A stretch of DNA of 64,000 bases from Amoeboaphelidium protococcarum X5 (GCA_023515725.1 JALDTO010000098.1:1204164-1268163); one strand, 5' to 3'; shown: positions 676 through 17,792, counted from the stretch's first letter. The notes: generated by a model not told the origin, from the sequence alone. A program made the numbers and translations.

Positions 676-3600
676 ATGACTAGCTTTGCACCGGTAAGTT
701 TCTGTCAGTAGTTGATATAAATGATAGAATGAAAATGAGGGAATGTATGTAGGGACAGTGGGTATGGTTTACTTAGAACGGTGGAAATGTTAACGATGGT
801 CGATTGTTGATGGCCGGTCAGATAACAAGTGGTCAAGGGAATTAATTTGTAATTAAAGCATTCAACAATGATCCTGCAGAGGTATGATGTACCCAGTTTT
901 TATTTTGATGTTCATGTAATAATAACAAGTGTCCATCATTTGTAGTTGTAACAAGTGGATGCCTCATGCATTAAACCGATGCATCAGTCGTCGGTGGCGA
1001 GTGTTTCAGACATGACATTGTTGGCCGATTTGCACGAGGCATCGTTGTTACATAACATCTCACAGCGCTATCTGAATGATCTGATGTATACTTTCACTGG
1101 TAATATTCTGGTGGCTGTCAATCCATACAAGTAGTTGGATATTTTTGGTGGTGATCTGGTGAGACGCTACTATGAGATGGGCAAATCAAAGGTTATCACT
1201 GATATGGATCCTCACATTTACGCTATTGCGAACGAGGCGTATAGTTAGATGTTGCGCAAGTAGGAGAATTAGTGTGTGGTTATCAGTGGTGAAAGTGGAG
1301 CTGGTAAGACAGAGTCTACGAAGCTGATTTTGAACTTCTTGGCTACAGTGTCTTCGAAGAAGTCTCTTGTTCAAGATCAGATCATGGATGCATCTCCTAT
1401 TTTGGAAGCTTTTGGTAATGCAAAGACTGTGCGTAATGATAATAGTAGTAGATTTGGCAAGTTTCTTGAGGTTTAGTTTTCGAGCGACGGTAGTATTGCT
1501 GGGGCTTTGACTCTTTAGTACTTGCTTGAGAAGAGTAGAATTGTGTTTTAGGCTGCAGATGAGAGGAATTATCACATCTTTTATGACTTGATTCTGGGAG
1601 CTACCGATTAGGAGAGGAAGGTTTTGCAACTGACTAAGCCTCAAGATTATCGTTATTTGAAGTAAAGTGGCTGTTATACTCTGAAAAATGTATCTGACGT
1701 TGATTCGATGAAGGAAGTCCGAGAGGCTATGCACACATTGAACTTTACAAAGAATTAATAGGATCAGAAGATATTTCGTGCACTGGCTGCTTGTCTGCAT
1801 CTGGGCAACGTCACCTTTGAGGGCCCTGATGATGGTGTGCAAATCGTTGATAGCCAGCCATTGTAGATTGCGGCTGATCTTTTGGAGATTTCTTCAGAGA
1901 ATTTGAGCAAGGCCTTGATTAGCAGGACTTCTATTACTAGGGGTGAGACGTTTATTACGCCTTTGAATATGACTTAGGCGAATGATGCGAGAGATGCTCT
2001 GGCTAAGGCAGTTTATGGCAGGATGTTTAATTGGATTGTCGCTTTTATCAATGATACTACCCGTAATAAGGATGATTTGAAGTTTGTGGGAGTGTTGGAT
2101 ATTTTTGGCTTTGAGGATTTTTAGGTGAACAGTTTTGAGTAGTTTTGTATCAATTACGCAAACGAGCGTTTGCAATACTATTTTAATATGCATATATTCA
2201 AGCTAGAGTAAGAGGAGTACCAGAAAGAAGGCATCAATTGGTCCAAGATTGAGTTTGTTGATAACCAGCCTACTATTGACTTGATCAGTAAGAAGCCAGT
2301 GGGCTTGATATAGTTGCTTGATGAAGAGTCCAACTTTCCAAAGTCGTCGGATTTTACGTTTATTGAAAAGTGTCATAAGAATCATGAGTAGCATCCATCT
2401 TATATCAAACACAAGACTAACAAGGTACAATTTGGTGTGAAGCACTATGCTGGAGATGTCTATTACAATATTGATGGGTTCTTGGAAAAGAATAGAGATA
2501 CGCTGAAAAGTGATTTGATTGATTTACTGAAAGGTTCTGGCAATGATTTGGTTGTCTAGTGGTTTAGTGAATCTGATGAAGCGGATACATCAAATTCTGG
2601 TGGTACGATTAGAGGATCTACAATGTCGTTGAGCGAGTCCAAGAGTGGGACGCTGAGTCGTTCTAATACCATGAGTAAAGGCAAAAGTGGCAAAGCTCTT
2701 ACAACTGGATATCAGTTTGCTGCGTCTCTTAACGAATTGGTGAATACTTTGACTGCTTGTAATCCGTATTTTGTGCGTTGCATCAAGCCCAATACTAAAA
2801 AGATGGCTAAAACTGTTGATAAATAGCTGATCATGGCGTAATTGCGTTATAGTGGTATGCTTGAGACTATTCGTGTGAGAAGAGCTGGATTCTCGTACAG
2901 AGCAAAGTTTGAGGATTTCCTCAGTCGCTACAACATTTTGATCGAAGGCAACAAGAAGGGCAAGGATCAGGTGTCCAATTGTAAGGCCATTCTGAGTCTC
3001 CTTCCACCGGCAAAGTTCAAGGACATGTATTAGGCTGGTGCCACTAAAGTCTTTGCCAAGGCGTCGGTAGAAGTGGAACTGGAGAAGATGAGAGGTGATA
3101 AACTTGTAGTCTTTATCGTTGTGCTCTAGAACTTTTTCAAAATGGTAGTCGCGCGTCAATAGTTTTTGCGAGATAGACAGCGTATTCTGACAGTACAGAA
3201 GATGGCTCGTGGCTGGTTGGGCAAAGCTAAGGCTCGAAAGTGGAAACGTGGTATTGTGTCTATCCAGTCTGCATGGAGAGGTCGTAAAGTAAGAATTTAA
3301 TATGAGGCAGAGTTGGCCAAAGTTCGAGAAATGAAGAGGTTGCGAGAGGAAGAGGAACGCCGTAAAGAAGAGGAGGAGCGCTTACGATTGCAGGAGGAAG
3401 AGAGGCTGAGACTGCAAGAAGAGGAGAGGCTGAGATTGGAAGAGGAGCAAAAGTATGAAGAGGCCAAGAAGCAACATGCACAACTCGTATCTGACAGTAG
3501 TAACGGTGGCGCTGATGATGATGACGAAGATCCTGAGATCAAGGCCAAGCAAGAGGAGCTCTTGAGATATTTGGAAATGAGTGAGCAAGAGCGCGCAGCC

Positions 3601-6600
3601 AAGGCAGCTATGCGTGCTGGTATGACGCCTAACAGCCGCAAAAGGAAAGAGCAGGATGTTCCTGAAGCGGTTTAGTAGAGAATGAAGTCGTAGAAATTCC
3701 AATTTTATCAGCTGAATGTCCCTGAAAATCATGTGAAGATCTAGTATGAGATGTATTCGTTGGAGACTCTGCGCGGCGGTCAAATAAAAGAGGGTAGTAA
3801 TGAGAGTCTGAATCAGATGGTCTCTGGATCCGAGGATGCTACTTGGTTGAAGTTCTCGAAAATTTTCTTCAACGAAGGAATTAAGCCTGGCTTCAATTCT
3901 AAGCCATTGACTTCGTCTCTGTTGAAGTTCTCAAACTCGGCAGATCAGTCGTTATAGAAAGCTGCTATTGCTATTAATCAGGCGTGTTTGAAGCTTGTAA
4001 TTGACGACTGTGACATTTAGCTTGTGAAATGTCTGCTTGATTTTATCTGTGAGCAGACAGATTTGTTGATGTCTAGTCAGACTTAATTGTCCAAGAAGTT
4101 GACGTACATGGATGAGACGCTATCTTAATTTGCTAGAATGACTAGTAAAAATGGCGATGAGGCTGCTAATAAGAGAGCTTGGCGCTTTTTTGGTTTGTTC
4201 CTAGGCTTCTATTGTCCGTCTATGTATTTGGCTAAAGCCCTGCTTAATCATATTGTGGTCGATGCACCAGATATGGAGACTTGCACATGGTGTTTGCAAA
4301 GAATGGCTAGGAGTTTAAAGAACGGCTCTAGAACTGGTTCTGCGAGCTCAATAGAGGTTATGTCGGTGTTATGGAATCTGCCTATTGTTTTGTGTGCTCT
4401 CTGGGCTGATGGTGAGCAGGTGGCGTTTGAAATTGATTCTCTTAGCACGGCTAAGGAGGTCATGCAGAACATTGCTGTTCAAAAAGGTTTGAATAATAAA
4501 GAGTCCTGGAGTTTGAGTCTTCAACTTACCAACGGATCTGTGGTGAATGTCTCGAGTTTAGAGCCGATACTGAATTTTATAGCTGGTGTCGAGTCGTTGA
4601 ACTATTAGATTTTAGGCGGTAATGATTAATTAGCTTAGTAAACTGTGTATTCTGATACATAGCAAGCTGGTGATTAGAGCATTCCGATGATAATCCCTGC
4701 TCTTAAGGTTGACTCGGTGCCAGCCATTCCGATTTTATCAGCACCTATTTAGGTGAATAGTAGTGATGATCATGCTTTAATATCTACGTCTGGGCCTCCT
4801 CCTCCACCACCCTCAATGTTGAAACCAACTACAGCTATTGCGCCCCCGCCGCCTCCACCAGTCGCTGCTGAGTCGAGTACTAATCTACCGCCACCTCTGC
4901 CGCCATCTGATAATTTTGCTAGCCCGCCACCACCACCGCCTGCAACCGAGGGGATTGTATACGCTCCGATGCCTCCGCCACCTGCACCAGCTCCAATTTC
5001 GACTGGATCAGGCCCACCGCCTCCTCCCCCGCCATCGCAGTCTAGTGGTCAGCCTGCAAGCAAAGGATTATCGTTGGCGGAATAATTGGCTGCGAAAAAA
5101 GCTAAAATGGGCGTCCAATAGTCTGATGAAGCTTCATAAAGTGTAACTAGCAACAATTAAGCAGTTACTGCACCTGTCTTTTCTGCTAGTGTCGGTCCGC
5201 CTCCTCCACCGCCAATGTCAGCTGCTCCGAGCTATTAGGCTCCTCCACCACCTCCTGCGCCTTCTGGATCTGGTGCTTAACCACCGCCACCTCCACCTTC
5301 CAACATTTCCTCATCTGCGGCGCCGCCACCTCCACCGGTAGGTCCTACTTCTGCGCCAATGCCTCCACCGCCACCAGCTCCATCTAGTTCGGCTCCAGTT
5401 AAAGGCGGTGGACTTTCCTTGGCGGAACAGATTGCTGCGAAAAAATTGAAATAAAGCGCAGCTGTTTCTGATGGTAATTCTGAATAGGCACCGCCGCCGC
5501 CCGCCAAGTCGGTTAACAAGTCATCTGGGTTATCATTGGCGGAAGAAATTGCCAGAAAAACTTAGACAAGAATGAAGGCTGCAATCTCTAGTTCTGATGA
5601 GTCGCAATAAAAAGCATCTAATGATGCACCTGTGATGTCAGGTATGCCGCCACCTCCACCGCCCCCGGCATAGTCTTAATCTGCATCGTCATCGGCTGGT
5701 TTAAGTTTGGCGGAGCAAATTGCGGCGAAGAAGTTAAAATCATCAACTGTGAAAAGCGAGACTAGCCCGGTGGCTTCCTAATCTTAGGCTCCGTCTGCTG
5801 CAGCTAGTTTGTCCAAATCTACAGGAGGAATGTCGTTGATGGAAGAGCTAGCCAAACGTTCTCAGAAGAAGATTCCCCAGGCTGGTAGTTCCCAAAGTGT
5901 CAATACTCAAAGCTCATCAGCTAACTTGCATGCGTCTACTGGTGCAGGTGGAAAGTTGTAATCTCCTTCTGGTACCGTAAAGGTTCCTTCGGGTGCTCCA
6001 GCTCCTCCAGCAGTGCCAGGCGGACCACCTCCACCTCCTTAGGGTGCATCCACATCATCTCCACCTCCACCTCCACCGCCTGCCTCTGCTAACAGCTCTG
6101 CTAGTAGTGGATAAATGAGTTTGGCGGAGCAGATTGCTGCTAAAAAGTTGAAAAAGTCGGAAAATGCTCCAGCTCCTCCGCCTCCTGATCCGGCACCATC
6201 ATCTTCTGCGTCTTCTGGGGCTAAGATGTCCCTTGCCGATGAGATTATGGCGAAGAAGCTAAAAAGTGCGTCATCGGCCTAGTAATCATAATCTGCAGAG
6301 AGTGCTGCACCACAATCTGCTTCTAAAGCAGCTCCAATGTCGTTATAAGAGGAGTTGATGGCGAAAAAGTTGAAGAAAGCTTCAGCCGAGACTGAGAAGA
6401 GTGCCACCCCGTCTGTTTAAGCTAAAGCTCCTCCTGCATAGCCTTTGACAATGGCCGAGGAAATTCTGCAGAAAAAGTTGAAAAAACAAGCAGCTGCGGC
6501 TATTGATACTAAAACTGGTGCTGATGAAAAAAAGTCAGATTCTGGTCTTAATAGTGCGTTGAATACTCCTTCTAAAAGTACTGCCTAAACTCCAGAACCT

Positions 6601-9600
6601 GCATCGGCAGGTTCCAAGTTTCCAGCTTTAAAGAAGACTAATAATAAACCCCTCCCAGGACCTCCTAATCCTCCACCACCTCCACCCCCTGCTCCATCTA
6701 CTCCTAATCCTGGCGTTCAGGCAGCCGCGGTATAGCCAAAGAAAGCTTTGTCTCTTGCAGAATAACTCGCGGCCAAGAGAGCTTAAGTTGTAAAGCCATC
6801 AGATGATAGTCCGACCAGCGATCAAGACTAACAGTAGGCAACGCCATCAAGTGATGTCCCGCCATTACCGTAATAACCGCCACCGATGGCTTCTACTGCT
6901 TCATTGCCTCCACCACCACCACCTCCTTCGTTTGCTTCTGCATCACCTCCGCCGCCACCACCTCCAGCTGGCACTAAGCCGCCACCTGCAGTAGAGCCTA
7001 TACCTTTAACTGCTCTATAACCGCCAATGCCTCCTCCAAGTTCACTTTAACATGCTAACTTTGCTTCTGGTGGTTCTGTCGGAAATAGTCCGCCACCTCC
7101 TGCACCTCAAATTAATGTTATTGGATCCAGTAGTGTGTTAAGTGGATCCATTCGTGATAATTCCAAGGCTCCTAGAGTTTCCATAAGTGGTTTGAAGGCT
7201 CCTCCTGCTGCGTCGTTGAATTTGCCTACTCGATCGAGTCAGCCATCTAAGCCTGAGCCTTTTGCTTCGTCTAATTTGGCTACATCTGCGCCTCTGAATA
7301 TCAGCGGCACTAATGATGAAGTTTTTTCTGTCGTTGATTCTAAGCCAGCAGTCAGTTAATAGGCATCCATAGGTAGTTTGAATATTTAGATGGGTCCACT
7401 GCCAGAAATTCCTGCAGAAACTGCGTATATGACCGAGAAAATGTCTAGTTAATCGACCAGTATTGATGGACCATAGCCATTTGAAGTTATGATCAGGAAT
7501 TGTAATTTGCATAGTGTAAACATTGAGGATGATATGGAAGTAGATTTGTTTTTATAGTAGATCACTAACGATGTTATAGGGGAGTCTATTGTGTTGGATG
7601 AGTCGCATTCACTGGAGGTTCATCAATTGATCTCTTCCGGTAACGGAGTATAAGCTATCTAGCATTTGATGAAATTTGGAGAATTTAGTGGAGATTTTTA
7701 CAATTGTAGAAATCAAGATGGTTTTTGGTGCAAAATTGTGTTACGAAATGATGGAATACAATTCGTGGATGGCGATTCTTCATAAGTTGCTCCGTTTGAT
7801 CAAGTAGTGGTCAAAGCCGATTCTGCCAATGATTTACAGCTTAATTTGTGGGGTGACACGGTTAGTCTGCGTTTTGTCAACAATCAAGCTAAAGTCATCG
7901 AAAGTACCATTCAAGAGTAGATCAAGCAAATGAAAGGGAGATCCAACTTGGCTGTGGCTTTAATTAACTACGGTCCTAATGATTCTGGATTTGCTTTTTA
8001 GAAGGGTCAGTTGCTCACTGTGCTTGACAGAGATGACATCAATGGTTGGGTGCAGGCGCACTATCAGGACAAGTCCGGCTGGTTTCCATCAGAAAATGTG
8101 GATATTTTAACTGCGTCATCTAAAGTGGATGTAAATGCTAATAAAATTGAGCTGCAAGGAGTATTGTTAACGAAATCTCAGGCTATTGAGAAGAGAATGA
8201 GAGATATGGGTGTTCCTATTCCTACTGGGTTGCTTCAGGACACAACTCAGTAAGCTTTGCCGACTCCAGCTGCTCCTAATGCGTCCGCTGCTCCGCTTCC
8301 TGGATTCTAGACGATGCGTCTCAGTTCAAGCCCATTTGCTGCATCTTCAGATAACGCTCTTAATGTGAGACCTGGTGCTTAAAATTCGCGTGCTATTTCA
8401 GCATCGCCTCTGGCACGTTCATCACTCAGCAACACTTTCAATAATTCTAGTTCCTCTCTTGGATCTGGAATGATGATGTCTATCTCTGAAGCAGGATAAA
8501 GTTAGTTGCCTCGTACATCTGCCAAAGAGTCTAGCTTTGTGGATTTTGCCAAGATGTATTTTAATTAGGAGGTGAAAGTTGGCTTGTTTGGTAAGACTGT
8601 GCGTAAAGGTGCCCTCAATGATCTCGATGCTATGGAGAAGGAGATTCAGATGAAGGTAAAGTACTCCGAGAAGCCTATCACCGCCCCTTTGACAAAAATT
8701 CCGGATGCTACTGATCAGAAAATTTCAGTCGAGCTTTTCCATTATATTATGCAAGCGATGGGTGATAGTCCTACCAAGAAGTCTCGCTATGAGCTAATGC
8801 AGTAGATTTGTATCATTGGTATGAAGAAGGAGTCTTTACGTGATGAAGTGTATTCATAAGTCATTAAGTAGATTACGTCAAATCGTTCTCCTAAGGAGCA
8901 GTCATTGAAGAATGGATGGATTCTTTTGTGCTTATTGTGTACCTGCGTGATTCCATCTATGAGATTGGAGATGCACTTGTACAATCACTTGCACTATTTG
9001 GCTTAGCAAAAGAGCAGAGATTTCCATGGCCATGTAGAGCAGTGCATTGACCGGCTACGAAAGAACAAGTTGTCTCCGAGAATTACCCCGCCATCTGAAG
9101 ACGAAGTCAAATGTTTGGAGATTAATGGTAAGTAGTTGTTCAAAGTGTGGTTTTCCGATGGTTCTGCCAAGACTTTTGTCATGGATTCGCATCTGATGGC
9201 AAGAGACATTATTAGAGGACTTTTTGATAGATTTGATATCACTAAAAATCATCACTGCTATTCTTTGTACGTATCGATGCTTCCCGCAGAGTAACTGTTG
9301 ATACCGGTGTAAATTATGGACAAGATGGCTGATGTGTTGAATTCTGGTGATATGATGTGCAAGTAGAACATCAAGGAGTTTTAATATGTGAAATTGCTCT
9401 TTGTCAAGAAAGTTTGGATCAACTAGATTGATTAAAACTTGGCTGCAGCTACCATATCGCTGATGTTCAATTAGCTGGTTGAACAGTTTTTGAAAGGATT
9501 GTTGCTTACTGACTAGGAACTTGGTATCTAAGCAAGAGAGCTGCACTGTCAGGCCATTTCTCAATTGATCTAGATCAAGAAACTTAGTGTGGACGATCCG

Positions 9601-10110
9601 CAGGTGGTGAAGAAACTTGTGCCTGATGTTTTACTGTATAAGGGCGATGTTCCCGCAGATCTTATGCAGGCAATTAAGAAGAATGTTCTCATGAGCTCAA
9701 TGTACAATCCGTTGGAAGTTGATAGAATGAAGCAGTTTATGCAGCTGTTGTCAAAGTATCCGCTTTATGGTAATTCTGTATTCCGTTGCCATTCTAGTAA
9801 TGATTCAAGATTCAGTAGTGGATGCTTCATTGCAGTGGGTCAGAATGGCGTGCTGGTTCTAGATAAAAATTCTATGGCCGTGTTGGAATAAGTACCATTT
9901 TAGATGATTATGAACTTTCGTCATGATGAAAATGAGTTTACAGTGCGTTCCGGTTTACCTGGTGGAAACAAGATGATGCTCAGATTTGAGACCAGGCAAG
10001 GATTTGTAATTGCTGATTTGATTAATTCGTACATTCAAGCTCTCGGCTAGTTGAACCTGATTAACACTGTGGTGTCTGTTACTTAGGAATCGGCCGTGCC
10101 ACTGCAATGA
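676..10110 (+). CDS. MyTH4-FERM unconventional myosin (class XV/VII/XXII-like), ~3100 aa: motor, ~3 IQ, SAH, MyTH4, split FERM with Pro-rich/WH2-like insert, SH3, MyTH4, FERM
   Basis: ATG 676; introns 694-752 and 882-945; exon 946-10110 is open with TAR=Gln. P-loop GESGAGKTE, switch [40 protein letters not shown] helix ~3331-3470, SH3 ~7950-8110 (GWFPSENV), second MyTH4 (LRDEVYSQVIKQIT), C-terminal FERM ([10 protein letters not shown]). Confidence 0.93.
5065..6786 (+). repeat. Ten protein-level repeats, consensus (L/M)[12 protein letters not shown], separated by polyproline/Ser-Ala linkers, within the myosin tail
   Basis: Copies start near 5065, 5410, 5527, 5698, 5827, 6115, 6226, 6337, 6445 and 6748, e.g. 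[41 protein letters not shown]. Confidence 0.9.
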
Positions 10111-10517
10111 AATTTGAAGTGATTGAGAGGTGATTTTGAAAAATATTAGATAGAAGAAAGAGAATTGATGTTGGTGATGATAATGATGATAATGATGAGA
10201 TATATACGATTGAAATTAAATCTGTTTACCTTTAAATCTGACTGCTTCCAAGATTGGATCAGATGAGATTATTTCAACGAGATAAATTGACAGCAATCTA
10301 CGCAGGATCTCTCTCTCTCTCGCTCACTCGCTCCCTCGCTCGAATCAACACAGGTCGGACCGCCTTGTTGTTGTTATGAAAGTTGTTTCATCTTCAGTTT
10401 TTAAACTGTTTCATCGGCCGTCTTCTTCAAAAAATATAATCTTGTAACATTCAATTCTCTCCAATATAAACATATTCTGACTAATTTTAATTATTTTGAT
10501 ATAAATACCAGCTAATT

Positions 10518-13500
10518 ATGAGTTAAAGTACTGTTGGAGATAGTGCTAAAAAGTAAAAGAGTATCAATGCCGCAGGATAGATTGAGAGTATCAAGCAGAG
10601 GCCCGAGAGAATGTCTACATTGTCCTACTTGAGTATCGGTCAGCTGTAGCAGTCAACGATAAAAGATGGATTTTTGAATAGAAAGACTGAGCATCTGAGT
10701 CTGAATCCCAATTCTAAGCATCCATCATCAGGTTTTGGTAGAAAGTAGTGGAAGGTTAATAGAACGATACTGAGAGGGAGCAAACTGTACTTTTTCAAGT
10801 TGAGCCCGGAACTGACGGCTTTGACGAGAGAAATGTTTTCCGAGAACAATGGCAGCAGCAATTTGACAGCCTCGATCAGCCTGGAGGGAAGTCAGATTGT
10901 TTCACTGGATCATCTACATCATCCGTCACAGCAATAATAGTAGTCACTAAAGTAGGGAAAGAGTCCGAGTACTTTGCGTAAGGCGAGTACAGCCGAGAGT
11001 AGTAAGCGCCGTGATGTTGGTACTGCCGACAGTTAGACTGTAAAATTGAGCTCTGAGTCACTTAACAATCAAGGCGAAGGTTCTAATGACAATAACGATG
11101 ATGATGATGGTGGCACCATGGATCAAAGTTTATAGACGCCAGTGCATAGAAACTTCAATATAGTCGCACATAAAGGTAAAGATCTTCAGCCTGATATGAT
11201 CGATGGCACTACTAGATTGATTCTGTTCAAGAGTCATGTATAGGATGGTGACGATAGGCGTCTGTTTAATTATGCCGATGTTTTTGTGGAGGTTGATCTC
11301 ACGGCTTCACCGTCAGGAGATTTGAAGTTAAAGCAGTAGCTGTGCCTGGTGGTGACTGATAGCAAGATATTACTGCTTCCGAAAAGATGGGTGAGAATTA
11401 CGAAGAGCATTGATGTGACCAGTCAATTTACACCGGCAGAGAGAAAAGCAATAGCTGCTGGAGATCAGTCGTCTTAGTAGTAGATTATCGTGATGAGAAA
11501 GAGAGCTAACGAAAGTTCTGGATTACATTCGAAGCTAGAAATTGCTACAGCTGCGGAAGATTCTAGTAGGAGAGGTAGTTTGATCGGTCCTTTATCGCCG
11601 AATAATGATTAAATTATGAAGAAGATTGATCAGTCTCTTGTCGCCAAGTTCACGTATGATGGTGAGTTTGAGATTGAATCTGCGTTTACTTTGAGCGATG
11701 ATGCTAATGGTACATTGATGGAGAATCTACCTGACAAGGAGAAGCCTTATTTATTTGGTCTTCATTTAGTATAAGAAGATAGCAGTGTGGTGTAGCGATA
11801 CTTTAAGGCCAAGTCGGTCGAGTCCAAGTCGGAGTTTTTGATTGCTTTTGATTAAGTGAAAAGTTATCTGCTAAGTCAGAGTAAAGGCGGCTAATTTACT
11901 GAAATTCCTACTCTAGAGAGAAGAAACAATAGAGACTCTGATGGAAGCGGTGAAGAGTATGGCCTTGGTAATGAGAAATTTATTAATGTAACTAAAAAGC
12001 ATCCAAGTTTAGCTTTCAGTAAGGCTTCAAAGTTGGGCACTAATGCTGTCATTGATAGTTCTAGATTGCTCATGTGTGTTCAGGATGATTATTTGAAACC
12101 TGCATTTGTGGAAGCATTATTGCATGAGTCATTACTATAGTAGGCGTGTTCTAAAGATGGCGATAATGACGATACAGAGCTGGCTTTGAATATTAAATTG
12201 ATTTCATCTCGCCTGCTTTCGAGTTCCCTCTGGTTTTCTGATGTCAAGGCTGCGGATTTGATCAAATATGTCACTGGTTTACTACATTCTGCACTTGGTA
12301 GTGGCAAAACTACGATTTATATAGAAGCTGTGAGAAGGTTATGTCAATTGGTTGATCCTAATCAGGCCATGTCTCCGCAGCGGCGTGATCAGTTAAAGGT
12401 TCTCTGTTAGAAGTAGAAGGGGAATCTTGAACCTAATAGCGATGTACTGAACTAGTTGAAGGATCTTCTGGAGCGCTTAAATCAAGAGGCAACAAAGTTG
12501 AATTATAGTTACGATTAGTCTTCAGTGTGGAGATCGCTTGGGGACGATGGTCTGAAGCTGCCAATCTCTGACTTTCTTCATATCTCTATTGAGGCGATGG
12601 CTTAAGCATTACATTCGTTCTCAAATTAGCTTTTGCAGTCAGAGTTTGATGAAGGACTTCTATTTGGAATGTATCGCTGCTTATGGGATGGAGAGTTTCT
12701 TTCTCGTCACCTCTCCAGTAATTTACCTTTGTTTTTGCAGACTTTAATTAGTAAAGATGATGGAGGCAAGCGTATATTTATGATACATGCTTTATTAGAT
12801 CCGTTGTGTTAATTCATTAAGCAGTAAGTATTAGTCTAATGTAAAAGTGCCCCTTCAACCAAACGTGCATCTCTGCTCACTTTTTGGATCAGAGTAGGTG
12901 AGATTTTGAAATCTGAATATGATAATTAGTACTTATTCTAATGCATTGCCGAAGTTATGTGGTCGCCTCCGATTGTACGCCTGACTGAGAGCTGGAAGCT
13001 GGTGGATCCAAAGTATGTTCAATTGGTCAAGTCTGGTTGGATCAGTTCTGTAAGTGACATAAGCCAGGATAAAGCTAGTGGCCTTTTGAGTTTAATCTAA
13101 AGGTTGAGAGAGCGGAAATTGTAGCTTTTGTCTCAAGAGAAGTCTTAGTATGAAATCGGCCTCCTTCTAAGCATTTTGGACAGTAGTTTAGTATTTGGTA
13201 AGCAGTCTTGTGATTACTTATATCAAACGGAGGATAAGCTTCTCCAGTTTGTGAATAAAATATTTCATCACTAGCAGCCATAGTCTGATAATTATGATGA
13301 TTGGTAGCCACTGGTTTGCAATTTTCCTGATAAAATAGACGAGTTGTATGAGCTGAGCTAGGAGTAATTTGGCAAAGAAATGGAGATTAGTTTTAGTTGT
13401 GAGGGTCCTCATTAATATGCCACTGCTGCATTGTCCTCCCATTCTAATTCTCTGAATATTAATGGTTTCGATAATGTGCCACTGTAAGATGGTCACTCAT

Positions 13501-16500
13501 TTTATCAGATTTATATTGATGTTGATACGGAAGATTTGACGAAAGTTGCTGCACAAAAGCTCGAGAAAGACATGCAAGTAACTGTGGCTTATGGTGCGTC
13601 CTCTACTTCTAAGTAGTCTGCTGTGCTTAAATAGTATGAAAGTGGTCCAAACAAGTCGATTCTGGTTGACGACAATTTTGAAGTCCTGCTTGAGGTGTCT
13701 GCTGGAAAAGATGAGCAAGGGCGTTTGGTATTACGTGCTGTATCTTTGGATCGCTTAATGTAGCTTCTTATTGGTGGTATCACGTCGATTAAAGATATCA
13801 AAATGCTTCAAACAGTCGGTGTGTCTATGGATAAAGTGAACGAGGTGGATAATCTGCTAATTCATAGCTACTTGAGTGTGTACAGAACTTTTTAGACTCC
13901 CATTTAGCTATTAGAAGTTTTGAAAAGACTCTGGTCTTAATGTGATAAAGAATCTGTTGAGGCCGCTCGTAGTTAGAAGCGGGGCAGAATCTTGCAAATT
14001 ATTGAGTTTTGGCTTAAAGATTATAGAGACGATTTTATGGACAGTTTACCATTGTAGGAAGGTGTAAGATAGGCTTTGTCCATTTTTTATAAAGTCCCGC
14101 CTTTAAAGGAAGCTGTTGGCAAGATCTAATCTAAAATTGGGACGATATTTTATGAGCCTTTTGTTGATGATAGTTGCTTTATCATGACTAAAGCTCCTAG
14201 CGATAATATCAATTTGCCAGATTTTGACTCCTTGACTGTAAAGTAAATGCATCAGTCTCTACAATTATTGGTCAGTAGGATGTATTAGCAAGTCGGTGTC
14301 AATGACTGGTTTAAACTGAACGATGTCATTTCGCTTTCAATGTCTCAATCTACTTTGTCTCATCATCAACTGTAGTTGCAGATTAAGTAGCTTTAGGCAA
14401 GTTCTGATGATCATACTGGTCATCATTCTGGTGTGATTTCCTTGGAGGAATGTCTATCACTTATTTAAATTCCAGTCTACAGCTATTCCGCAGATTCTAA
14501 TACCGTGAAGTAGCCAACTCCACGCACTGCAAGGCGTAACGTTGTAAGCAGACTTGGCTTTGATTAGAACATGGAATCTGCTACTGTTACCAGCACTTAT
14601 GCTCCCCTGATTACTGCAGTTCCATAAAATTTGCAGTCTATTCATCATTTCTAGCAGAATCTTGTGGACTGGACCATCCATTGTATCGTGTCTGCGTCAT
14701 CTGGGAGGCTGAGAGTCGTGAGATTGAAAAAGTTTATAGAGCTTGCCCGCTTATGTCGCGATTAAATTTCTAAGTATAATCTCATCACAGACTCTATCAT
14801 CCATGCTTTGGTGTCGCTGCAGAGTCGTTGTTTTGGAAAGTCATGGCAAATAATGACTGAAATGCCTTTGGAGGGTATTGAGCTGAAGCTGAATAAGTCA
14901 GATAGAGATTCTGTCGCCGTAGCAGAGACTTACATGGAGTTGCTCGAGGCATTGCATCGTGAATAGTCTTTGATGAGTTCTACATCTGTCTTGTCAGAGC
15001 TAGTCGGATAGATTTATTATCTTTCTCCCCTATGTGTCTTCAGTATCCTATGTAATCTTACCCTCAGTCAGTTTGATGAGTATTTTATTCACAATGATGG
15101 TAAAAAATTGAAGCTATCAGGTAATTACAAGTAGTCCTAGACTGCCGGTGGATTTACGAAGGCAATATCAGCGAATTAAGGCTTACCATTGATCAATATT
15201 GGAAGAAGGCTCCAGGCGTTTTAGCTAATACAGAAGCTCGGCTCTAGGAAATAGAGACCTTTTTTCGCCGATTAGAGTCTTCAAGATGGTGTAGATGAGT
15301 TATTACTGAATTTTCTGTTAGTTCCTAGCTCAGTGCACTAGGCGCCTGGCTCTGTGTGTGACTATGATTCTGCGGTATCGGCCGCTAATCGAGACAATGA
15401 GCGGGTCAAAGTTCAGATTGCTCTATTTAAATCGATTTCAGACTAATTGAAAGCGCGACACAAACTCAAGCTGAAAGAGTTTAAGAAGTTATAGTTGGTG
15501 TATGAGAAGGACAAGGACAGAGAGAAGTCCCGCAGTCCAAGTAGACCGACTAGTTCGATTGGAAGACCGTTGAAAGATTTAGGTGCCTTGGTTGGAAGTG
15601 GTAGTAGCCCGATGCTTAATAATCTTTTGCGCACTGGTAGCTAGAGAAAGTAGGCTACACACTCAGTTGATTCTTTGAGTGGAAATACTAGTGAACTGTC
15701 TCGTCCAGTGTCCGCAGAGCCGTCAAAGTAAAGATCTAGTGTGTAGAGAAAGTTGTCCGCATTCAAATCTGTCCCGGAGCTAAAAGTCGATAGTAAAGAG
15801 AAAATTGATGTTGCCTCTCTTATGAAATCTAGCTCCAATATACGTGATAAGCCGACGAATAGTAGCTCATAGTATAAGTTGGATACGCTTTCTCCATCAC
15901 CGTCTGAGCAGGTGTACAAAAAGTAAATGGAAAGCAGTGCATTTTCTCTAGAAGATAGACCATTGGATCCCAAGACTGATAAGCCAGTAAAGGTGGTCTC
16001 TCTTATGCATTCTCGTAGCCATGTGGCATCTGATTATGCTCGCCGGAATTATGTTTTCCGCATACTGACTGATGATGATTAGGAGATCCTATTGCAAGCA
16101 GCATCCCAGGATGAAATGTTTGACTGGATACGCAAGTTGAATGAGGCTAGTTTCGAGAGTCTGCGCAAGATGGAAGATTCTCGTTTGAATTTGATTTAGG
16201 AAGCAGAGCCGGTGGTTGATGTTGCTAGCAATACAGCCTCGCAGTAGTCATTGAATAGTAAATCCGGTGCGAATACTGGAAATCTTGGCCGTAAATAGTC
16301 GTAGATTCAAAGTGGTAATGCCAAGGATAAGTTGTAGCCGAATGCTGTAGACGCTCCTAAACGTGCCAAGTCAAAGTTGGCGAAATCAACAAGTGATCAA
16401 CCAAAAGTCTTTAAAGTCCCTCTGATGAGTATTTTGCAACATGAGCTTGCATAAAAGGAAGTTATTGCCAAGATGCCTTAATTATCTGGTACCAGCCGAT

Positions 16501-17792
16501 TTTAATCTCTATTTAAGAAGAAGCCTGCTGCTGCTACAGTCGAAGTTTAAGATTCTGATATGGCAGCGAAACACCCGTCGACGATTGTATGGGATGAATC
16601 GAACAGCCTCCCTTTGATTGTCGAGAAATGTCTTGCAGAGATTGAAGCTCGCGGTCTGACGGAGATTGGTATTTATCGTCTTTCTGGCTCCAACAATGCT
16701 ATAAAAGATTTACGTAACTCTTTTGACGCCGATCCATTTGCTGTGAATTTGAAGGATAAGCAGTATGGAGACATCAATGTTATCTCTGGTGTGTTGAAGA
16801 TGTTCTTGCGAGAGATGCCTGAGCCTCTTCTGACTTTTGACCTCTTTGATAAATTTATGGCTGCTGCAGAGTTGGTAGATTATAATGATCGATTGATTGC
16901 TATAAAGACGTTGGTGCACAGTTTGCCTCGTCCTAATTTCTATATCCTTAAGAGATTAATTGAACATCTTCAATTGGTCACTGACTATGAGGAAACTAAT
17001 CATATGTACGCGTCCAATCTGGCTATTGTATTTGGCACTAATGTCTGCCGTCCACCGCCTGTGCATTGGTATTAGCATAGAGCTAATATGAGCTAGAATG
17101 GTTCTCAGTCGGTGTAGTAATAGTAATCCGGTCATGGTGAGTCCGCGCAGCCTAATTAAGCCTCCGACCATCCTTCTGCTCTTGGCGACGCGGAAGTGGA
17201 CAACAATGACAACTTGGCTAGCACTATGCAACATTTGGGTAAATGTACCACCATTGTCAAGAATATGATTTTGCAAGCCGAATGGCTATTTATGACTGAT
17301 GAAGAATATTTTAGGAATGAAGAGAATGCGCGTGCGGCAGAGTAGTAGTAGCAATTAATGTAGTAATAAGGGGTTTATAATGATGGTGAATATCACAATA
17401 ATAATGAAAAGTCTCTTGAGTAGTAATTGCTGGAGATTAACGTTCCTACTTATAACTCGTCCCTCTGCGATGATCTCATAATTGAAGAGATTTTAACTGA
17501 TGAGATTGTACCGCTGGAGCATGACTTTGTTTAGCAGTTGGCGGATTAGCTGACTCCTACATTGAAATTTCAGGAATAGCAGCAGTAGTAGTAGGATTAG
17601 CCTTTGTAATCGGAACAATTGGAGCCGAGTGTGACTAAAGCTTCTTCCATGAGTTAGCACTAAATGTTTCAGTTTTAACGTCGCGGTCACCTCTCTATAA
17701 TCTCGTAGGCTGATACTTTGCTCAATCCAAACAGTCTTATTAATGATCCCAGTCCTCTGGCAAGAAATGAAAGGTCCACAGAATAGTTATGA
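10518..17792 (+). CDS. Bem2-like multidomain signalling protein (PH, RasGEF-like regions, PH, RhoGAP), ~2420 aa
   Basis: Single frame from ATG 10518 to TGA 17790-17792. N-terminal PH (DGFLNRK...KQWK...LRGSKLYFF), RasGEF-N-like (YLSVYRTFQTP, ILQIIEFWLKDYRDDF), PH (YARRNYVFRI...EMFDWIRKL), RhoGAP (PLIVEKCLAEIEARGL.EIGIYRLSG, LKMFLREMPEPL, NHMYASNLAIVFG). Confidence 0.85.

Follow-up and report, generated by a model that had tools for sequence, protein, structure and literature searches.

Filopodia, microvilli and stereocilia need both a MyTH4-FERM myosin and an actin polymerase, and the manner in which the two cooperate is an open question. Myosin IIIa, for its part, carries the WH2 protein espin-1. 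Among the core factors of filopodia, MyTH4-FERM myosins and VASP rely on each other, as DdMyo7 does on VASP (PMC8352590), and myosin X clusters Ena/VASP (PMC9926217). Here, we analyze a myosin gene in a 64,000-nucleotide stretch of DNA (the window; GCA_023515725.1, JALDTO010000098.1:1204164-1268163, positions being counted from its first letter) from Amoeboaphelidium protococcarum X5, a fungus-related parasite of algae in which TAA and TAG are read as glutamine. The first FERM domain of this myosin is split by a long, disordered insert, which carries proline tracts and ten copies of a short helix motif. What the locus would share with the systems above is the coupling of a barbed-end-directed motor to a G-actin-binding elongation factor at tips; in those systems, however, motor and polymerase (or WH2 protein) are distinct polypeptides, while here the candidate actin-loading motifs lie in the motor chain itself. 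In the literature that we searched, no myosin is described as carrying WH2 or VASP-like motifs in cis, and the myosin survey of PMC3942036 contains no mention of WH2.

We put at roughly 50% the probability that the F1-F2 loop of this motor, which appears to be of the VII/XV type, has been expanded into a disordered, Ena/VASP-like actin-loading module. Both ingredients would belong to known kinds, namely MyTH4-FERM myosins and Ena/VASP-type motifs, and what appears to be new is their combination in one chain. The first-pass annotation had proposed that an insert of about 900 residues splits the first FERM domain between its F1-like and its PH-like lobe; the split itself stands, while its placement had to be moved to the F1/F2 junction. 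Namely, in a Gonapodya protein without the insert (P0008, KAJ3332500.1), residues 418-766 correspond to myosin residues 909-1261 and residues 771-995 to myosin residues 2216-2433, and since these two blocks flank the gap, the insert comprises 955 residues at nucleotides 4594-7455. P0008 in turn aligns with the myosin VIIa MyTH4-FERM-SH3 structure 3PVL (E 2.8e-24), where the insertion point falls in the short loop that precedes the PWRLFFRK strand, at the F1/F2 junction. For this reason, the site adjoins the start of F2 (a PWKL.IRK-type strand) and not the PH-like lobe. The insert consists of 21% Pro, 16% Ser and 15% Ala. The many polyproline tracts and ten helix motifs seen at first pass were both confirmed by counting, and the FPALKKT noted near 6619 was located at nucleotides 6616-6636. 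The consensus of the motif starts with G-[LM], and its copies span nucleotides 5068-6789, as follows (residue numbers are those of the first residue in the myosin frame).

4594-7455, + strand: the insert, Pro/Ser/Ala-rich and disordered, 955 residues at the F1/F2 junction of the first FERM domain
4795-7101, + strand: polyproline tracts, 19 of at least 4 Pro, candidate profilin or SH3 sites
5068-5109, + strand: motif 1, residue 1420, GAB-like
5413-5454, + strand: motif 2, residue 1535, GAB-like
5530-5571, + strand: motif 3, residue 1574, degenerate basic tail
5701-5742, + strand: motif 4, residue 1631, GAB-like
5830-5871, + strand: motif 5, residue 1674, FAB-like
6115-6156, + strand: motif 6, residue 1769, GAB-like, predicted helix
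6226-6267, + strand: motif 7, residue 1806, predicted helix
6337-6378, + strand: motif 8, residue 1843
6445-6486, + strand: motif 9, residue 1879
6610-6645, + strand: SKFPALKKT stretch, best match in the genome's VASP being SKFPGLKVGNK
6748-6789, + strand: motif 10, residue 1980, LSLAEQLAAKRAQV

GAB and FAB stand here for the G-actin-binding and F-actin-binding blocks of Ena/VASP. Six of the ten copies have a K-L-K-[KSQ] tail. Six motifs follow a polyproline tract at a distance of 9-13 residues and a seventh at 19, the corresponding gap in the genome's VASP being 17 residues. Here and below, the queries for Pfam, database and fold searches were stop-free pieces, and the full read-through translation was analyzed by local scripts. 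In the AlphaFold2 prediction for the piece 6115-6279, both motifs are helical (pLDDT of about 80 over the block), and the proline linker is coil.

The genome's own Ena/VASP is made up of an EVH1 domain, polyproline, GAB, FAB, a K-F-P/G repeat region of about 270 residues and a tetramerisation-like coil, and it is found at two loci.

C233:688300-690400: Ena/VASP locus 1 (L035/L040), with EVH1 at C233:688574-688837 (57 bits)
C233:690221-690307: VASP tetramerisation-like coil (22 bits, just below the Pfam cut-off)
C200:382286-384025: Ena/VASP locus 2 (L036/L039), the second copy

Its polyproline-GAB stretch, GLAAALSGVKLKKS, aligns to GLAAAIAGAKLRKVS of 2pbd_V, the VASP peptide in a crystal structure with profilin-actin (E = 0.056, about level with the top match in the PDB). 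By sequence comparison, nine motif copies of the myosin match the VASP GAB block L-A-x-x-[IL]-A-x-x-K-L-K-K and one matches the FAB block, to which one KFPxLKK stretch has to be added. In particular, when ungapped matches to the genome's VASP were set against 5000 composition-matched shuffles, the motif consensus found its best match in the GAB (score 33, shuffle fraction 0.0006), copy 5 in the FAB, GGGGLMGEMAAKLGKR (0.0018), and the 6610-6645 stretch in the match listed above (0.0024), and none of 378 background chunks reached any of the three motif scores. What is more, myosin residues 1625-1690, running from copy 4 over a linker to copy 5, are colinear with the GAB-linker-FAB of VASP (61 vs 29 +/- 5.4, 0 of 2000 shuffles), and the whole insert scores 243 against the non-EVH1 part of VASP, vs 186 +/- 16 for shuffles (fraction 0.003). 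In other words, shuffle tests, colinear alignment and VASP-like spacing agree with the initial suggestion that the helices resemble the Ena/VASP GAB and copy 5 the FAB.

The likeness to Ena/VASP thus lies in the succession of a proline tract, some 10-20 residues, an L-A-x-x-[IL]-A-x-x-K-L-[KR]-K helix and a FAB-like block about 40 residues further on. The pattern that marks an Ena/VASP GAB, L-A-x-x-[IL]-[AS]-x-x-K-L-[KR]-K after a proline tract, is present in the myosin, and a FAB block about 40 residues past a GAB is found in the step from copy 4 to copy 5. The differences are just as clear. The myosin gene has neither an EVH1 (WH1) domain, the PF00568 matches of the genome all lying elsewhere, nor a tetramerisation coil, PF08776-like matches being confined to the VASP loci on C233 and C200. 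Furthermore, nine GAB-like copies share one myosin chain, compared with one per VASP subunit, and the module is housed by a motor protein, in a loop of its FERM domain.

The insert plausibly works like the proline-GAB-FAB module of VASP, and the myosin motor may feed or hold the actin on which it walks. In such a mechanism, the proline tracts would dock profilin-actin, as in VASP and in formin FH1 regions, and the helices adjacent to them would take over the actin monomer; profilin genes are present in the genome. Tethered to the motor, the helices would raise the local concentration of monomers at growing filament ends in filopodia-like protrusions; the motor would do what EVH1 targeting does for VASP, and the ten cis-linked sites what tetramerisation does. 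The outcome would be that elongation is promoted and capping perhaps opposed. That a single chain combines, in full, a motor directed to the barbed end with an elongation factor or monomer ferry of the VASP type, having ten cis-linked profilin-actin loading units, we advance only tentatively, as it seems rather less probable than its absence.

The most serious alternative is that the helices are weak F-actin side-binding sites, FAB- or Lifeact-like, which tether the motor to its track or cross-link parallel filaments and load no monomers. GAB and FAB are both short basic helices, such that sequence alone cannot separate a preference for G-actin from one for F-actin, and copy 5 does match the VASP FAB block. 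The motif start M-S-L-A-E-x-I, which may resemble the start of the Lifeact peptide, points the same way. However, nine of the ten copies fit the GAB rather than the FAB pattern, the spacing of 9-13 residues past a polyproline tract in six motifs is the arrangement by which VASP takes actin from profilin, and side-binding would leave the 19 proline tracts unexplained. All in all, we find this alternative unlikely, if worth serious attention.

That said, a number of observations weigh against an Ena/VASP-like loading module. Four of the ten motif copies lack the KLK tail. Canonical WH2 membership, which the first-pass annotation had read from an amphipathic helix followed by LKK, was not upheld in any of the searches made: the Pfam WH2 model (PF02205) gave no match, at E <= 1 and at E <= 10, in ten and then seven stop-free pieces; a six-frame WH2 scan of the whole genome found 8 sites, none of them in the insert; hhalign of the motif against the genome's WH2 domains returned a probability of 0.2%; and the motif profile run against PDB sequences gave chance matches only, with no WH2 or VASP chain among them. 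Similarly, phmmer with the polyproline-motif piece 5281-5451 did not recover 2pbd_V from the PDB, the genome's VASP had no match in the insert by composition-corrected BLASTP, a hidden Markov model of the ten motifs scored below 0 throughout on VASP and local background and was uninformative, and the motif profile run over the genome did not pick out VASP. Since these profile tests are negative, the similarity rests on short, K/A-rich, low-information motifs judged against shuffles. Finally, as the genome keeps a complete VASP, there is no gap that needs filling.

Part of this can be qualified. Namely, the Pfam WH2 model also misses the genuine VASP GAB of this genome, and for this reason its negative result has little power; the WASP-, SCAR- and verprolin-like WH2 domains of the genome do match it. 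WH2 occupies the actin cleft formed by subdomains 1 and 3, and in the myosin the linker from helix to LKK is shorter than in the genome's canonical WH2 domains. Judged by the profiles, the insert is a member neither of the WH2 Pfam family nor of the Ena/VASP family. As in formin FH1 regions and in verprolin/WIP/WASP, disordered, profilin-type proline tracts are interleaved with or followed by candidate short G-actin-binding helices; unlike in formins and WASP, no FH2 domain and no Arp2/3-activating acidic tail is seen in the myosin gene, and the canonical WH2 profile is unmatched. The Pfam scans of the pieces reported no FH2 domain, no search having been aimed at it. A predicted complex of actin P0082 with the piece 5680-5778 and adenosine triphosphate scored 0.27 and 0.24, the mark being 0.34, and we give it no weight either way. 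As a side observation, a WH2-like site, DLLSQIRKASVQNLKKV, lies just below the Pfam cut-off at C179:447410-447478 and C135:101178-101246 (L007/L008).

How far does the motif extend beyond this genome? No close relative emerged from a full HMMER search with the MyTH4-F1 piece, in which the top matches are 33-39% identical. The orthologues that have the MyTH4-FERM-SH3-MyTH4-FERM order are holomycotan, and a ciliate origin of the DNA was rejected on this ground. A homologue search with the orthologue P0001 returned only P0001 itself. On its metagenomic contig (L031/L032), which is intron-rich and uses the standard code, about 3 kb of Pro-rich mini-exons lie between F1 and the PWKLVIRK strand and carry SLAEQLAARKLKKV and SLADQLAARKLRKV, with a FAB-like GGLM...MAALKKNK about 38 residues after SLAEQLAARKLKKV. 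On L030, from a metagenomic relative, the first part of the insert closes with LTLVEQLALRKA, and the C-terminal half of the myosin, on the opposite strand, opens with LADQLAAKRLKMKK. The motif is thus kept in orthologues that are only 33-36% identical in the flanking domain, where it carries LKKV or LRKV. As regards the arrangement on L030:3045-13198, motor, MyTH4, F1 and insert are read on the + strand (8569-13198), and insert, F2/F3, SH3, MyTH4 and FERM on the - strand (8029 down to 3045); this split at the insert could reflect an inversion, a gene split or a scaffolding error. The L030 insert also has about seven Y-F-M-[SA]-G-[ED] repeats.

Among the relatives, the same junction is filled in various ways: P0004 has an FH1-like array of PPPPPPSD repeats (residues 520-760), P0010 has SH3 and PDZ domains (residues 270-560), and P0001 and P0005 have long disordered inserts. 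On this comparison of predicted proteins, the F1/F2 junction of the myosin FERM is a hot spot for inserted interaction modules, and since P0010 has SH3 and PDZ there and P0004 proline tracts only, it would be a general insertion site.

The helix also occurs outside myosins. When metagenomes were scanned for the motif with degenerate DNA, L046 was the one eukaryotic match, the others being four copies of a single unrelated, prokaryote-like protein. The protein at L046:391-1209 (- strand), with a relative at L048:1698-7256 (+ strand), is eukaryotic and unrelated, has no Pfam match on record, and combines proline tracts with C2HC zinc-finger repeats (the zinc-finger-like unit C-P-D-C-G...H-K-K-V-C is repeated). 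After its polyproline come a GAB-like helix, the FAB-like GGGGMMDELQNRLKKR and MPALKKAPAK, all nearly identical to the myosin motifs. In other words, helix, proline tracts and FAB-like block recur in independent contexts. A homologue search with the L046 motif region led to one protein.

These comparisons bear on a second alternative, in which the motifs dock a partner other than actin, such as a calmodulin-like light chain, acidic lipids (via the KKLKK tails) or an adaptor, while the proline tracts serve SH3, WW or EVH1 domains, the insert as a whole being a scaffold or regulatory hub. The negative outcome of all standard WH2 tests fits such a role, and so does the varied content of the F1/F2 site in P0010 and P0004. 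However, it would not account for the three motif types mapping to the actin-binding blocks of the genome's VASP with VASP-like spacing, nor for the same helix accompanying a FAB-like block in the unrelated L046/L048 protein. We therefore regard a non-actin scaffold as improbable, somewhat more so than side-binding to filaments.

Returning to the module favored here, its motifs are under strong purifying selection. The gene has a second, diverged copy at C249:226079-235339, with insert DNA 92% identical to that of the C98 copy (the copy in the window). The ten motif peptides are the same in both, and the indels all preserve the frame. From Nei-Gojobori counts between them, the ratio of nonsynonymous to synonymous divergence (omega) is 0.016 for the motor, 0.02-0.05 for the folded domains, 0.22 for the whole insert and 0.29 for its spacers, and it is 0 for the motif codons, which have 22 synonymous and 0 nonsynonymous differences. 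At the amino-acid level, changes number 0/140 in the motifs vs 73/765 in the spacers (Fisher p = 4.6e-6). The selection on the motif codons argues that the insert is translated. Within the array, copies encoding the same peptide are identical at 30-32 of 42 nucleotides, and only 43% of the positions that share a residue also share the codon; because identical peptides use different codons, the array appears to be old and kept at the peptide level. A recent DNA duplication, which we also considered, is rejected on the same codon differences. Furthermore, the motif profile finds 9+9 sites in the whole 23.6 Mb genome, and since all of them fall in this gene and its second copy, the array is not a product of chance.

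On a separate note, each locus that we examined (myosin, actin, WH2 proteins, VASP, profilin and the other MyTH4 genes) is present as two diverged copies, for example on C98 vs C249, C264 vs C135, C207 vs C206 and C233 vs C200, and the synonymous divergence (dS) of the myosin copies is about 0.1-0.37. It seems that two genomes, homeologous or highly heterozygous, are represented in the assembly.

We now turn to the genetic code. Read with the standard code, the region gives short open reading frames, with 38 in-frame stops at 4680-7450, all of them TAA or TAG and none TGA. In the other two + frames across the insert, the longest TGA-free run is 208-210 codons. Glutamine in the myosin frame is encoded by 44 CAA, 52 CAG, 48 TAA and 66 TAG codons. 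The actin genes of the same genome carry TAG at the conserved glutamines in ALDFEQEM and VAIQAV and end in TGA, and this confirms TAG as glutamine. The code seen here is consistent with the UAR-to-glutamine code reported for Amoeboaphelidium, an opisthokont (PMC5304391). The reading of the insert as an intron was tried and rejected, the insert being TGA-free and in phase with both flanks and its motif codons being selected.

The last alternative, that the insert is a neutral low-complexity expansion or unrecognised intron without function, draws on its extreme composition (52% Pro+Ser+Ala) and on spacers that evolve faster than folded domains (omega 0.29 vs 0.02-0.05), but is highly improbable. 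The stretch of 955 codons has no TGA, stays in phase with the sequence on either side and is present in two copies at dS of about 0.18; its motif codons show 0 nonsynonymous vs 22 synonymous differences, and the motif persists in orthologues whose flanking domain is only 33-36% identical.

As for the gene as a whole, its encoded domain order is motor, IQ/single-helix region, MyTH4, FERM, SH3, MyTH4 and FERM. With its tail order of MyTH4-FERM-SH3-MyTH4-FERM, it is by domain prediction a MyTH4-FERM myosin of the VII/XV type.

811-10110, + strand: whole myosin open frame, 3,099 codons counted on the open frame, the start codon not being fixed and TGA being the stop
988-3150, + strand: myosin motor domain, approximately residues 60-780 (Pfam Myosin_head, E 7e-32 on piece 1273-1473)
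3151-3810, + strand: probable IQ region and charged EEERLRLQ-type single-helix or coiled region, from the translation
4108-4362, + strand: first MyTH4 (PF00784 at C98:1208271-1208525; Pfam on piece 4129-4605)
4381-4593, + strand: F1 (RA-like, ubiquitin-fold) lobe of the first FERM (Pfam RA_2, 35 bits, residues 85-155 of piece 4129-4605)
7456-7935, + strand: F2 and PH-like F3 of the first FERM, placed by homology to P0008 and not from a Pfam match
7957-8106, + strand: SH3 domain (Pfam SH3_2/SH3_1 on piece 8002-8250), aligning to the SH3 of P0008
8800-9111, + strand: second MyTH4 (PF00784, 83.7 bits, C98:1212963-1213274)
9112-10107, + strand: probable second FERM region, from position and domain order; the C-terminal product of the L031 orthologue has RA_2 and IRS

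The motor domain is 40-56% identical to the motor parts of P0001, P0005 and P0008 (BLASTP), and the nearest named full-length matches are animal myosins VIIa/VIIb. The tails of myosins VIIa/VIIb and of class XV have the same MyTH4-FERM-SH3-MyTH4-FERM order, and differ in that F1 is joined to F2 by a loop of some 10 residues, in place of the 955-residue insert found here. Large elements inserted into FERM domains are known from talin (in an F1 loop) and kindlin (a PH domain in F2), in which, as here, a FERM lobe junction or loop tolerates such an element; in the present case, the site is the F1/F2 junction, the length 955 residues and the content an array of candidate actin motifs. Class XV myosins are reported from aphelids, nucleariids and Gonapodya (PMC6299283).

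Around this gene, the next TGA-only open frame downstream is at 10500-17792 (+ strand, 2,430 codons). Other MyTH4 genes lie at C98:935885-938212, C207:344123-346465, C98:458702-459013, C142:579753-580064 and C206:144268-144621, and at least one of them has two MyTH4 domains about 2 kb apart, possibly being of class XXII. The motif profile, run over the whole genome, finds the helix motif in none of these other MyTH4 genes.

What would an Ena/VASP-like module within a MyTH4-FERM motor mean? Since the Pfam WH2 model does not detect motifs of the GAB type, modules of this sort have probably been annotated too rarely. If the reading is true, the gene would provide a compact construct for motor-driven monomer delivery or tip-localised elongation. 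It would also imply that tetramerisation and EVH1 targeting are unnecessary, and would offer a natural test of whether motor-coupled monomer delivery drives filopodial growth. Finally, a natural fusion of this kind, if true, would show that the physical coupling of motor and actin-loading activities is selectable.

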